DNA from: Blepharisma stoltei ATCC 30299
Lineage: Eukaryota; Protista; Ciliophora
Assembly: GCA_965603825.1 (NCBI GenBank)
Contig: CBFDEM010000012.1
Location: 620,001 to 684,000, forward strand
Direction: 5' to 3'
Length of the DNA stretch: 64,000 nucleotides
In this document: in pieces, positions 10,225-50,343 of the stretch
Layout of the letters: every line of letters begins with the position of its first letter
Numbering within the stretch: the first letter of the stretch is position 1
Notes under the pieces: model-generated
The model's database searches: none
What the model saw: only the letters and a program-made list of their open reading frames with translations
Told to the model about the DNA's origin: nothing
Program-made: the position numbers and the translations under genes

Positions 10225-10329
10225 ATAAGATTATTAGAAAAATAAATTCAAAAAGCATAGAGAAAATGCAAAAAAAGCCTTATTATTAAGAATTTAATTT
10301 AATTTTCTTATTAGTCGTTTTATACAAAA

Positions 10330-11361
10330 ATGCTGTTTTTCCTTTTATGCTCATCTATAGCGACAGCTAGCTACCTGTAAGGTTTATATAGTGATGAGTG
10401 TTTGTCAGTTCCTTATACCATTTGCTTAGATAATGGCTCATATGTGCTGGGCGACCTAGCAGAACCTGACTCACTTGTAGGCTGGTGGACTTTTGACGAC
10501 AAATTTGGTCATGACTATTCATCAAGCACCAATCCTTTATCTGAGCCTGCGCAAGCAGGCCCTGGAATGCGTAAGATCTAAGTAGTGGGCAAAGGCCATT
10601 CTTTGTATTTCGACGGGACAAATCAAGCAGTCATTCCTCACTCATCTTACTACGAAGTCGACCAATTTACACTTAGCATGTGGATTTATTTATTAGAAGA
10701 TTCTACAGGAGCTTGGAGACTAGTCTTACAAAAAGGTCAAAATCCTCAAGAACTGACACCAACCCTTATGTTTTGGCCTCGTGAGCGTCGTTTACACGTA
10801 AGAGTGTCAACTGAATACTATTGGAATGAAGGACTTGACTCAACTGGCCTTATAAATTTACGCAGATGGAGCCACATTGCAGTTACTGCTAGCGGCCAAT
10901 TGTTACAATTCTACTTAAACAGTTATTTAGATCGCCAAGTTATATTAAACGCTCTTGTAAAGAACAACCAAGGAGACATATACCTCGGAAAAACTGATTG
11001 GCATCAAGGATTTAATGGCTTTATTGATGATTTAAGACTATATTCATCAACCCTTCATGAGCAAGATTTAACTGCATTAGCAGCTCCTGCAATTCCATTA
11101 GCTGCCTCTTTAGGAGTTATGCTAAGCTGTCAGCTTTGTAACTACCATGATGCTGAGGCAGGATGCTTAGACAACTGGCACATGTGCTCTTTAGAAGAAT
11201 TATATGCAGGCCCTTATGAAATGGCAAGAGCAATGGGCTGGTTCAGATTTACAGCTGAAATTTGGACAAGGAACACAGAAGACCAGACCACAACTTCGTC
11301 TGATGAAATGCAAGATCCTGATCTGTTTAAGGTAGGAATATGCTGTAAAGATTACGAATAA
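10330..11361 (+). CDS. Secreted LamG/concanavalin-A-like domain protein; 3 exons, 333 aa
   Basis: ATG 10330 with signal peptide. Removing 15-nt introns 10377-10391 and 10571-10585 gives one frame with LVGWWTFDD, SLYFDG, FTLSMWI, WSHIAVT, FNGFIDDLRLY and a Cys-rich tail. Confidence 0.85.
10377..10391 (+). other. 15-nt spliceosomal intron
   Basis: gtaaggtttatatag; removes an in-frame TAA; A at position 10. Confidence 0.85.
10571..10585 (+). other. 15-nt spliceosomal intron
   Basis: gtaagatctaagtag; removes an in-frame TAA; A at position 10. Confidence 0.88.
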
Positions 11362-32568: not shown

Positions 32569-33290
32569 GACTTCCAGTATCTTTTGAATTGACGATGATA
32601 TCTGTCGTATTTATAACAATCCTGAATGATTTCACAATGGCTACTGTAAGCTATGACTGAGTTAGAGTCTCAAAAAAGCCAGAGCATTTCAATTTAAAGG
32701 TAATGTTTATAATTGCCACTGTTCTTGCCATAGTTCCTCTATGTGAATGAATTACATTAATTGTATTTATGTTTAGCACATATGGACTCTTGCAATCCAA
32801 ATTTTTTGTTAGGTTTTAATGTTGAAACATTTTCTTATGAAGAAATTTTGACAATTCTTTTTTTGCTGCTAATTAACCATTTAATTTTTCTAATAAATCT
32901 TCAGAAATTAGTAAAGATATGGTAGCGATTTCGTGGAAGAAAACATGGTGGCAGAGTGTTATATAGTTTTTTGAGCTTCAAGATGCGATTAAAGTTGTGG
33001 CAATAAAAGTAATAGAAAAAATTTATCAAAAAAAGGGGAAAATTGAATGCGGATTTTTTGAAGTTTTTTACTTGTGGGAAAGAGGAAAAAGGTGAGATTG
33101 ATAAGGCTAAAGAGCAGGAGGAAGAAGAGAGAGAAGAGAATAAAAATAAAGATAAAGAGGACTATCATAAGGATACAAATAGAGAGCAAGATGGACTGAT
33201 GGAAAAAGATGAGCACCAGCATATACACAAAAGGATAGATAAAGATGAAAAAAATAAATGTAGTGTATTTGTAAAATTACTTTATTATCA
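32569..33290 (+). pseudogene. Degenerate 3' fragment of the H+-ATPase gene
   Basis: Aligns to ~29837-30710 with frameshifts, a ~126-bp deletion and smaller deletions. Confidence 0.88.
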
Positions 33291-33314
33291 GAAGAAATCG
33301 AGAAAAATATTACG

Positions 33315-34476: not shown

Positions 34477-35919
34477 CTATACTTCATTAATTCTCTGTAT
34501 TGTGCTTGTCGGCCCATATATAGCTAATGCAGTATCTCCTTCAGAAAATCATTTCTTATAAGTCGCTTCCAAATACTTCTTATCCATAGCTGCAATTCTT
34601 GAAGCTATTTCAGTTTTCGGTACTTTTTTGTCCATATAAATGAGCTGGCACCCAAGGGTTTGAATCATGTCGCTTCCTGCTTCAATAGCTAACAACTCAG
34701 TATAAATTTTATTTTTCGCTCTTTGGATTTCTTCAAATGACAGTTCTTCGAGGTATGTTTGTTTTCTATCAATTGTTGGCTTGATTAATGAGGTTATGAA
34801 CTCACCTGAGGCGTAGTGGCCAAACATCCCAGTGTCTCTGTAAGGGATAAATAAGCATTCTTGTTTTTTAATATCTTTCATGTCCCCAAACCATCTGTTC
34901 ATATAATTGTAGAGCCCATAAGGATAGTTTGTGTTTATAGGTGCATTTGGGTCATATTCCATAATTCTTTGGAGAAGCAAAAATGGCCAGTAGTCTTCGT
35001 GCTTCCATGAAGGAGCCTCGTAGAAGACTCCCATGTGGGCTAGCTCATCTAAATCGTTCCTAACATAGATTGAAGATCCACAGAACTCAGGAGGATCTTC
35101 TCCATCAAAAGGATATTCAGTTGTCTTAGCTACTTTCCCAAAGTTTTTTTCAGCTATATCTACCAACTGGTCATGACTAATCGGCCCTGCCCCCAAAACT
35201 ACAATTCTCGGCCCCACATAGTGTGTATATATAAACTTCTTCAGCTGATCTCTATTTATCTGCATAATGCTCGTCTTATGTCCCAAGATTGGCTGTCCCA
35301 TAATATGGTTCCTATATGCCGTATAATGGACATTTTCCAATATCATTTCTCTCATATCCGCATCTACCTCTTGTGCTTCTCTCAAAATGACTTCTCTTTC
35401 TATCTCAATGCTGGTTTTATCATATTTTGAGCTTAGTAGCATATCACTAATAATTTCCATAGCTCTGGACACGTCGTTTTTAAAAACCTGCATTTGGTAA
35501 AGCGTGGTCTCTCTTGAAGTATAAGCATTTAGGTTTCCTCCCATGTTTTCTATTTCACTTTCTAACTGAATTCTGGTCCTTTTGTTGGTTCCTTTGAAGT
35601 GAAGATGCTCGAGGAAGTGGGCGATCCCAGTGTTTGCCATAGTCTCGTTACGAGAGCCTGCTTCAATCATGACACCAACTGTGGCTATTGCGTTGTCGAA
35701 GGGTTCTGTGGCTACTCGGACTCCATTGCTAAGAGTTGTTAATTTATAGGCATGATCATACTGGAGAGCCTCAGGGATTTGACCATCACGAAGATAGCCA
35801 CTGTTGAGCAGATGAGATTTTGTGAATTGGGAGGTGTCATTTTGCTTTTCTTGTGCCCAGATTCGGTAATTTGTATTAATAGAAGATGAAGCTCGCCTGA
35901 TGATGCTTCTCAAAGCCAT
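34477..35919 (-). CDS. PMPCB: Mitochondrial processing peptidase beta subunit / core I (M16B), 480 aa
   Basis: TLSNGVRVATE, AGSRNE, GIAHFLEHLHFKGT (HxxEH), NAYTSRE, DTGMFG. TGA at 34549 is read through (KK-W-FSEGDTALAIYGP) to TAG at 34477. Confidence 0.9.
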
Positions 35920-47553: not shown

Positions 47554-47761
47554 TATAAGTTCAACAAAACTATAGTTTTCTAGTGATATGTTTAAATAAA
47601 AATGCAGGGAATAATAACAAAGAATCGTATTAATGTTTTTTATGTTATGCAAACGTTTTGAAAATATTTGCATTTATTACTTAAAACTGCTTCTTGTACC
47701 ATAAGTTTATGATTTTTTGAACCTATTAAAAATAATTTTGCTAAGATGCTAATAATTTATC

Positions 47762-48229
47762 ATGATATGCAATAAATACAATATTGAATATCATACGAAA
47801 TGCTGCAAAAATGCTTTTAGAAGAGATCTTCTCCACGTCTTTCCATCAATATCTGCAGATGTACCTTTGACTTTAGTCTTAACATTCCAAGATGCGAAAT
47901 CCAACTTTTTTGACATAAAAGATTTTTCAAGCGAAAAAGACAAATGCCTCGAGAATTTTTTCGAGTTTTCTGAAGAACTGATAACTTTATTGTCTGAATG
48001 ATGATGTGATTATATTGACCCATCTTCAGGGCTACCTATGAAATCAGAGCCAGCTGGATTTTATAGTGATATAGAAGCATGCACAAGGGTTTTCCATTTT
48101 TCCCATCAAAATATCAATGGGTGTTTCATTATAGATCATCCAAGGTTCCATTTCAGCTCATATATAGCGTCGTTTTACACAACAGCCCCTGCTGATATTG
48201 TATTATCAGCTATAGAAAGAATTAATTAA
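47762..48229 (+). CDS. MMADHC: Cobalamin-trafficking protein CblD/MMADHC-like, 155 aa
   Basis: Tandem TGA TGA at 47999-48004 gives E-W-W-CDYIDPSSGLP (family WADFIDPSSGL). Also RRDLLHVFP, EKDKCLENF, GCFIIDHP, SFYTTAP. Confidence 0.85.
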
Positions 48230-48369
48230 ACTGTAAAAATTTGTCAAAAAGACTTCAAATCATTTTTGATTTAAATCAGTTATAATTAAATATAGTGATA
48301 TTTGAATTTCAGATCTCATAACTGAAAATTTTCTCTTGAATATTTTAATAATGAGGTTTTGGTTTTACT

Positions 48370-48650
48370 TAGAATTATTCCGCTTTGTTTAGGAACCAAG
48401 GGCAGAGTAGTTTTCCTACCAGACTCCTTACCTTAGGGGATTGCATTTCCAAAGTCCGCTACCTATCCGGGTTGTAGAGATTAGACACGACTCAAAGACT
48501 TTTTAAGCTTAAGAGTCGCCTAAACTCAAGCTTCAAGACTGATATCCTGATCGTAAGTAAGATAAGCTGAATACACTTTGGCAAATATGTTGCAAATGCG
48601 CCAATATGGTTTTGGAGACATCTGCGGCAGATAGGAACCTGGTAGTGAGC
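48370..48650 (-). ncRNA. Candidate structured non-coding RNA, family unassigned
   Basis: 43% GC (99/230 nt over 48421-48650) in an AT-rich spacer with no long ORF. Nested helices form with G-U pairs only on the minus strand, e.g. 48645-48633 with 48428-48416. Confidence 0.55.
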
Positions 48651-48706
48651 ATTAAATGTGATAAAATTAATTTAGATTAAACTTTAAATTAATTATTTAT
48701 CCTTGC

Positions 48707-50083
48707 CTATGAAGCTTTATTCATAATAATTTGGTCAAATGCTTTCGAAGCTTTATTTCTAATTTCGTCAAGAGTGAAAAATCTGCTGGTTTCATCAGGA
48801 TCAGCCATAGCGTCTATATCAATTTCTAATGGTCTTATCAAAGGAGATCTTGATTGGTTTCTTCCAATAAGGTTTTTATTGCCTTCATTTTTCTCATTAG
48901 AAATTGCAAGCAAAGTACTTATACACTCCTCAATTATATTAATTTCTGATAAATCAGTTTCTAGCTGAAATTCTCTACAAGTAAACCCAACTCCACTGAG
49001 CATTTTTTCTATTTCAGAAATTGGGTTTAATAATGTTTGGAATATTTCTTGTGTTTTTTTATAAGCATCATTTTCTGCTTCTATATTTTTCACTGTCTCT
49101 TCATATGCCTTATTTATTTGGTCAATTTTTTCTGCCTTGGTGCTTTCAGAAAACCCACGGGTTTTATGAAAATTCGAAATCTGGTCTTTATATTTTTCTA
49201 TTTCTTTTTGAATTATAATAATTTCTTCCCCTAATTCATACATATATTGGGAAAGTCTAGTATTTTCATCAAAAGTGGTGACAAATAAATCAACAATTTC
49301 TTGGAAGCTATCAATTTTGCATTGATTTGTCATAGTTTCCATGCCTGAGTTAAGCTCTTTGATAAAATCCATGTAGCTGTTTATTTTTTCATTTATTTCT
49401 ATGCAGGAGTCTTTTCAGACTTTAGCTTGATTTTTTGAGAGTTGAAAGAGCTCTGAAGCATTAACTGTGGGTTCTGCGAAATTTACAGTAATTCCTTTGA
49501 GAAATCGATTTTCAGACATTTTGCCTTCTAAAAGTTGGCTGCTCAACAGGCTGATCTTTTGGGAATAATCATTCCGTGTTGAGCTCAAGGAATTTTGTAT
49601 TTTTACAATTCGTCCTTGATTTATTTCATCTTTGTTAAAGTTGAAAACTGAGACTTCGCTAGCGCTCTTTCTAAGCCTTGTAGTGCTTAAAAGCTGAATT
49701 TCTAATTGTTGGTTGGATTTAAGTAGAGACCCTTTATCTTTTCTAAGCATATCGATTTTATCTTGCAGTTTTTTATTTGTGCTTTTCAGCTCACTTAGTC
49801 TCTTAAATTCTCTTTCCAGTTCATTTTCAAGCATTTTAATCTTATCATCTCCTTGCTTTTTCCGTTTTTCTCTACTCTTGTATTGATTTTTTGAAATTCT
49901 CTCATTAAGCATGGCCTTGATTTCTTCTAAATCTTTTCCAAGAAGAGTTGATTGTCTTCTTTCATGCTCCAATTTTCTGGTTAAAGCTTCTACTTCGCTT
50001 TCTAAGCTTTGCACTTCATTCTGAAGTAATGGCAACTTTACTTCAGAAATTGATCTACTAAGATGTATTAAGTTTTGATTCAT
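48707..50083 (-). CDS. Coiled-coil protein, outer dynein arm docking complex (ODAD1/CCDC63/114)-like, 458 aa
   Basis: TGA at 49415 joins two ORFs. NKKLQDKIDMLRK and IVDLFVTTFDENTRLSQYMYELGEEI resemble ODA-DC motifs. Confidence 0.6.
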
Positions 50084-50343
50084 TTATACTATTAATTAGA
50101 TATTTTTTATTATTTTGCGAAAACGCATAGAATTTAAAATTTTATGATAAAAAGAAAGCCTTATTTTATTTATAAAGAATAATATCTATATATGATTTTT
50201 GCAATTATAATATTTCAAATAATAATAAAAAATTTGATTAAATATTTAATATAAAATTCCTTATTACATTCCTAATGAATTTTTCATAAATAAAATAGAT
50301 TTCAAGCTTTATTCGTCAAATTTTCAATCTACAGCTTATAAAC

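Follow-up and report, generated by a model that had tools for sequence, protein, structure and literature searches.

Two convergent genes in the somatic genome of Blepharisma stoltei ATCC 30299 enclose a single-copy, GC-rich, non-coding island, which is transcribed continuously with the upstream, MMADHC-like gene. The island resembles an RNA gene in composition and matches none of the RNA families that had been named for it. We tentatively favour, as falling somewhat short of probable, the reading that it is the distal folded part of an unusually long (~430-460 nt) 3' UTR of the MMADHC-like mRNA; the strand of the island, a poly(A) end beyond it, and a possible role in cis are our inference. 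The window, that is, the whole 64-kb stretch of DNA that was analysed (G000:C12:620001-684000), belongs to a source genome of 41.46 Mb in 64 contigs, the ends of which bear CCCTAACA telomere repeats, and UGA is read as Trp in the genes examined (MMADHC-like and ODAD1-like). For the somatic genome of B. stoltei ATCC 30299, a size of 41 Mb, 64 telomere-to-telomere contigs, CCCTAACA as the telomere repeat, UGA=Trp, and tiny introns and UTRs have been described (10.1101/2021.12.14.471607). The locus comprises the following features.

47762-48229, plus strand: MMADHC-like ORF of 155 codons followed by a TAA stop (Pfam PF10229, HMMER homologues, codon usage)
48230-48369, no strand assigned: AT-rich spacer, GC ~0.22, transcribed (RNA-derived contigs, unbroken in four of four runs)
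48370-48660, no strand assigned: GC-rich non-coding single-copy island, GC 0.42 (GC, genome search, codon usage, folding)
48627-48692, no strand assigned: transcript contig end zone, with right ends at 48657, 48692, 48627, and 48657
48707-50083, minus strand: ODAD1-like coiled-coil gene of 458 codons (48710-50083) with a TAG stop at 48707-48709 (Pfam PF21773 ODAD1_CC)

Both halves of the MMADHC-like ORF match Pfam PF10229 MMADHC (profile positions 120-191 and 201-265 of 272), and its codon-usage score is positive. By these profile matches, the ORF is a complete MMADHC C-terminal domain, its end (48229) coinciding with that of the family, so that the island lies 3' of the stop codon. At 47999-48004, two in-frame TGA (Trp) codons follow each other in the ORF; this site reads TGG TGG (Trp-Trp) in the closest orthologue found (L040:840-1289), a direct illustration of UGA=Trp here. 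No paralogue of the MMADHC-like gene was found in its own genome, and the gene is single-copy. On the other side, Pfam PF21773 ODAD1_CC matches both halves of the ODAD1-like ORF, which contains one in-frame TGA (49415-49417). The MMADHC-like (plus) and ODAD1-like (minus) genes converge on the island with a stop-to-stop gap of 477 nt. Among the window's nine convergent gaps, none is longer or richer in GC; the remaining ones measure 36-265 nt with a GC of 0.12-0.27, which speaks for a long 3' UTR.

The first-pass annotation had described a 43% GC island between two convergent genes with no credible ORF under TGA=Trp, and both points held. The measured GC was 0.42 over 48370-48660 versus ~0.22 in the flanking spacers, and in the 64-kb window no sequence other than the island reaches 0.40 GC per 150 nt outside ORFs of 90 codons or more. 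DNA searches of its own 41-Mb somatic genome at E ≤ 0.001 and E ≤ 10, as well as a search with a translated 59-aa piece, returned no second copy. The longest ATG-initiated ORF is 47 aa, and no coding signal was detected: a log-odds score of codon usage, for which 31 long ORFs from the window served as the training set, was ≤0 for the island in all six frames, compared with 0.24 ± 0.16 in real genes. A protein-coding exon or small ORF could at best use a 70-codon open frame on the minus strand (48462-48671). We regard this as highly improbable, given that the frame has no ATG, that no frame scores above zero, that the contigs show no splice joints, and that no protein-level paralogue was found. 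Elsewhere in the window, GC is elevated in two gaps between long ORFs, averaging 0.36 across 10225-10581 and 0.30 across 32651-33314, but stays below 0.40 over 150 nt; these gaps may contain short exons or small genes.

Transcription was followed in contigs from four runs of one study, which are unstranded and the run records of which do not state RNA. Contig depth differs tenfold between adjacent genes, and none of the four runs has any depth over the AT-rich intergenic spacers at 47562-47688 and 50102-50228, indicating that the contigs behave RNA-like, not DNA-like. In each of the four runs, contigs extend from 47712-47769 to 48627-48692 through the MMADHC-like ORF, the spacer (48230-48369), and the island; over this span they contain no splice joint, and no coverage gap separates the island from the ORF in any run. 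In run X1, where the span is split into two pieces, the depth was 9.6 for the ORF half and 8.1 for the island half. Two runs out of four share 48657 as the right end of their contigs, which is what a graph branch, for example at a poly(A) site, would produce. No poly(A) tail is visible in the contigs, which carry no strand information. The contigs of the ODAD1-like gene start at 48699-48705 and thus reach only 2-8 nt past its TAG stop codon (48707-48709), so that the two convergent transcripts end ~10-45 nt apart. The 3' UTRs of neighbouring genes in the same data are ~40 nt or less. One contig, in run X3 only, joins 48627 to 30 nt that map to C36:326511-326540 (L047:1501-1530). No sequence is shared at the junction; this contig is most likely an assembly or library chimera and is not taken as a trans-joined RNA.

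If the island belongs to a long 3' UTR, Pol II would read from ~47712 through the MMADHC-like ORF, the AT-rich spacer, and the island, and its transcript would stop at ~48657-48692, only a few bases short of where the convergent ODAD1-like mRNA ends. The product would be one unspliced plus-strand mRNA of ~950-980 nt, in which the island may form a compact domain whose closing helix (48416-48428/48633-48645) would lie immediately ahead of the end of the transcript. Its putative role would be in cis, in mRNA stability, 3'-end formation, or protein binding, rather than that of a trans-acting housekeeping RNA. We favour a long 3' UTR over an autonomous housekeeping-type RNA because the contigs are continuous with the upstream mRNA and contain no separate ~270-nt RNA. 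The equal depth over the ORF and the island in unspliced contigs argues for the same reading, as does the coverage of the spacer, as opposed to the zero depth of true intergenic spacers. So do the position of the island 3' of a complete ORF, its lack of coding signal, and a fold that is better than those of shuffles. In addition, no Pol III terminator is evident, since the plus strand lacks a stretch of at least four T beyond the fold and the minus strand has a single run of four U ~90 nt beyond it, and the island has no snRNA-type upstream element, unlike the SRP, RNase P, and U3 genes described below. However, the contigs are unstranded, a contig across two genes does not establish a single transcript, and two overlapping convergent transcripts would likewise merge into one contig. 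A 3' UTR of this size would also be more than 10 times the usual length here, an outlier that itself requires explanation.

Compared with structured 3' UTR domains of eukaryotic mRNAs, the island is similar in lying 3' of a complete ORF, in being co-linear with it at equal depth, in being non-coding, and in having a stem-closed fold near the transcript end. It differs in that it carries no motif of any described element (SECIS or any Rfam cis-regulatory family), in that heterotrich UTRs are normally tiny, and in that its plus-strand placement is presumptive.

Distant orthologous loci do not share the island, which counts against a long 3' UTR as a conserved feature of the gene. Word-indexed protein searches and an exact-protein look-up for close relatives gave no match, and a metagenome scan yielded one contig that was bacterial (59% GC) and was discarded as a false match. 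A full HMMER search of a representative library found 149 MMADHC homologues at E ≤ 1e-3, the best of which are 42-52% identical. The MMADHC orthologue contigs (L040-L043) look ciliate-like, with the standard code in these genes. The gaps downstream of the orthologues are 46, 311, and 512 nt with a GC of 0.24-0.26, and neither a GC-rich island nor similarity to the island was found 3' of MMADHC in the three ciliate-like contigs. The island is therefore not an ancient partner of the MMADHC gene.

We then considered the fold. All five helices proposed by the first-pass annotation can pair where they had been placed, and four of them occur in the minus-strand MFE structure (probabilities 0.89-1.0); the fifth, UAUCUU/AGGAUA, is replaced there by other pairings. 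The predicted elements are as follows.

48416-48428, minus strand: 3' arm of the 13-bp closing helix, AGGAGUCUGGUAG, pairing with 48645-48633 (probability 0.97)
48633-48645, minus strand: 5' arm of the closing helix, CUACCAGGUUCCU (minus-strand fold)
48449-48581, minus strand: long-range helix CCAAAGU/ACUUUGG around the central domain, with arms at 48581-48575 and 48455-48449 (probability 0.97)
48477-48527, either strand: stable hairpin with GAG/UUAG/GCGACUC stems (both MFE structures, probabilities 0.76-1.0)
48592-48625, minus strand: hairpin GCAGAUG/CAUUUGC with the cap CCAA/UUGG (probabilities 1.0 and 0.95)

On the plus strand, the closing helix is reduced to 7 + 4 bp around two A-C mismatches. 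The island had also been called highly structured; it does fold better than shuffled sequences, but only moderately so. The full 291 nt gave an MFE of -78.8 kcal/mol on the minus strand (z -2.56; 1 of 200 shuffles as good) and -77.5 kcal/mol on the plus strand (z -1.63; 14 of 200). For the core (48412-48650), the values were -72.9 kcal/mol on the minus strand (z -3.4) and -66.8 kcal/mol on the plus strand (z -2.7), with none of 60 shuffles as good on either strand, although these core z-scores are flattered because the bounds were picked from the closing helix. The ensemble diversity of the minus-strand core was below that of all 60 shuffles; on the plus strand, one shuffle was equally low. 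When MFE was regressed on GC and compared with 636 real 291-nt windows of the same 64 kb, the island ranked 24th (minus) and 32nd (plus), that is, in the top 4% of genomic windows for the better strand. The fold is thus better than random but not exceptional for this genome, and composition is the stronger signal. The earlier argument that G-U wobbles on the minus strand, set against A-C on the plus strand, mark the minus strand as the RNA fails because both strands fold with 13-14 G-U pairs (14 on plus, 13 on minus), at near-equal MFE. The only thermodynamic clue to the strand is the advantage of ~6 kcal/mol for the minus-strand core.

That clue, with core z-scores of -3.4 versus -2.7, counts against a plus-strand 3' UTR. 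A second reading is an autonomous, lineage-specific structured ncRNA on the minus strand, which we consider possible though rather unlikely. Such an RNA would start at ~48657-48692 and have the core 48645-48416 closed by the 13-bp helix, and its overlap with the 3' end of the MMADHC-like mRNA would merge the contigs. The GC of 0.42 in an intergenic background of 12-27% GC resembles that of known ncRNA genes (0.44-0.48), the island is the sole one of its kind in the 64 kb, and the minus-strand core has a z of -3.4 and an ensemble diversity lower than in any of its shuffles, with a mean probability of 0.88 for MFE pairs. Yet there is no coverage gap to the ORF, the depth is the same as that of the mRNA, and neither RTCCCWTA nor another recognisable promoter is present; the would-be promoter would fall inside the 3' end of the ODAD1-like gene. 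The absence of a paralogue in the genome and of an Rfam match, together with the modest rank of the GC-adjusted MFE, also weighs against a minus-strand ncRNA.

Relic DNA is a third reading, which we regard as unlikely: a decayed lost gene, a retained germline-type element, or another insertion would be passively transcribed without RNA-level function, being located ahead of the first 3'-end signal that can be used. The 13-bp imperfect inverted repeat at the island ends could represent old terminal repeats, and both the modest significance of the fold and the lack of an island at the orthologous loci of other ciliates are compatible with such an origin. An 8-nt direct repeat, TAGGAACC, occurs at 48391-48398 and 48632-48639, 241 nt apart, roughly bracketing the island. 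This repeat is at chance level, however, as ~0.7 such 8-nt repeats are expected within 300 nt by our estimate, and its second copy belongs to the closing helix. Published Bogo/BogoMITE and BstTc1 elements have C-rich terminal inverted repeats and a TAA or TATA target duplication (PMC9942856). The ends of the island (CTACCAGACTCCT ... AGGAACCTGGTAG) are unlike these, with no poly-C run, no TAA/TATA flank, and no TA/TAA-type flanking duplication. Germline-element relics in the Blepharisma somatic genome (MITE-like IESs, PMC9942856) are similar to the island in being short, non-coding, and lineage-specific with an imperfect inverted repeat, but they differ in that the island is single copy, with no second copy or fragment in the 41-Mb somatic genome, and in their terminal repeats. 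A lost gene is at variance with the lack of residual codon signal in any frame, and such GC should erode in a 33% GC genome unless it is recent or constrained.

The first-pass annotation had considered the size suitable for RNase P/MRP, SRP, U3, or telomerase RNA. None of these assignments survived: the island matches none of them at E ≤ 10, the first four were found elsewhere in the genome, and no telomerase template is present. The Rfam scan proposed in that annotation, run over the whole window at the gathering threshold, gave no match; at E ≤ 10, the region 48200-48800 gave only chance miRNA/snoRNA matches, and a tRNA/tmRNA scan found none. In the rest of the genome, the following genes scored above the Rfam cut-offs.

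C18:120774-121015 (L002), plus strand: SRP RNA, 116 bits
C18:415074-415307 (L003), minus strand: RNase P RNA, 83 bits
C31:54778-54979 (L004), minus strand: RNase MRP RNA, 106 bits
C32:769621-769821 (L006) and C18:710077-710277 (L007), both minus strand: two U3 RNA genes, 54-55 bits (RF00012)

SRP RNA was rejected for the island, as the island has no match to the SRP covariance model (Alu and S domains) and the SRP RNA gene of the genome lies on C18. RNase P and RNase MRP RNA were rejected likewise (no match to the RNaseP_nuc or RNase_MRP models with their P4 helix and CR-I/CR-V; genes on C18 and C31), as was U3 snoRNA (no match to RF00012 with its boxes A/A', B, C, C', and D; two genes elsewhere). 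The genes of these RNAs are about 200-242 nt long with a GC of 0.44-0.48, and RTCCCWTA lies 55-80 nt upstream of four of the five (SRP, RNase P, and the two U3 genes); no exact RTCCCWTA precedes the RNase MRP gene. The island is comparable to them in length (~240-290 nt), GC (0.42), and AT-rich surroundings. By contrast, it has no Rfam match, forms no separate transcription unit in the contigs, and has no RTCCCWTA on either side, the nearest match in the window being at 35295, ~13 kb off.

The RTCCCWTA element was used by Fajkus et al. 2021 to find heterotrich telomerase RNAs, which have this upstream element and a CCCTAACA template (PMC8287931). Heterotrich telomerase RNA loci (PMC8287931) share with the island that they are small, non-coding, and GC-richer and that they escape Rfam RF00025, but the island has neither the template nor the upstream element. 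With a template defined as a CCCTAACA permutation of more than one repeat (≥ 9-12 nt), telomerase RNA was rejected, as the longest telomere-repeat match in 48230-48706 on either strand is the 6-mer CCCTAA. A genome pattern search for the upstream element plus CCCTAACA gave two matches, and a template of 1.5 repeats is present in neither. A divergent RNase P, RNase MRP, SRP, U3, or telomerase RNA, for which only the size (~240-290 nt) and GC content fit, is therefore a scarcely credible identity for the island, and the locus is removed from the candidates for missing housekeeping RNAs. A cobalamin riboswitch, which the B12-trafficking neighbour had prompted us to consider, was rejected, with no Rfam match at E ≤ 10.

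The broader proposal of a divergent or undescribed RNA stands in part. The island is non-coding and transcribed and, by Rfam searches, belongs to no described RNA family; the named candidates fail, and the contigs contain no separate RNA. We see a possible, though minority, case for a new heterotrich- or Blepharisma-specific functional RNA, either an autonomous minus-strand RNA of ~235-280 nt or a sensor/regulatory 3' UTR domain of a vitamin-B12-trafficking gene. If the island is part of a 3' UTR, it would be a rare outlier in a genome of tiny UTRs and could conveniently serve to examine how a long folded 3' trailer is tolerated or exploited in heterotrich ciliates, whose genes are compact and whose UGA codon is reassigned. 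Were it instead an autonomous RNA, a lineage whose non-coding RNAs are barely charted would gain an orphan family.

A further candidate was snR30/U17, to our knowledge an essential, universal RNA of ~200-250 nt, a divergent form of which could in principle be encoded by the minus strand of the island as an H/ACA snoRNA. The feature behind this lead is the following.

48606-48639, minus strand: snR30/U17-like motif pair, GGUUCCUA (48639-48632), a short hairpin, and AAACCAU (48612-48606), judged a chance resemblance

The published snR30/U17 motifs are m1 AUAUUCCUA and m2 AAACCAU (PMC7601244), and the ACA box is reported to sit at an invariant distance of 7 nt downstream of m1/m2, with 3 nt between it and the 3' end (PMC2664660). 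In the island, m2 is exact and m1 is partial (6 of 9 bases, UUCCUA within GGUUCCUA); the two motifs flank a short hairpin with a possible 4-bp basal stem, CCAG/UUGG, and the size class fits. We nevertheless consider this identity very unlikely. The triplet at +7 is CAU (48598-48596) instead of ACA, the first ACA (48590-48588) being 15 nt after m2; the motifs belong to the 5' part of the fold rather than to a 3'-terminal hairpin; an H box/ACA arrangement of two hairpins cannot be drawn; and the basal stem competes with the 13-bp closing helix. Rfam SNORA73 has no match in the island at E ≤ 10, and in the whole genome it gave only a spurious 15.7-bit match without the m1/m2 motifs. A strict m1...m2+7+ACA pattern matched the genome once, at a coding-looking site. 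No snR30/U17 gene of B. stoltei was thus located elsewhere in the genome, which counts in favour of this candidate.

Pairing with 18S rRNA, the remaining hallmark of snR30/U17, likewise fails. The best duplexes of the island with the ES6 region miss rm1 and rm2, and an ungapped count found the same complementarity to the rDNA locus for the island as for shuffles. In ES6 of the own 18S (L038:1501-3231; C23:325806-327536), rm1 is GGAAUA and the rm2 site is UGGUGU, which pairs less well with canonical m2; yeast rm2 is UGGUUU. The U17 RNA of B. stoltei may accordingly carry a compensating m2, ACACCA or AUACCA.
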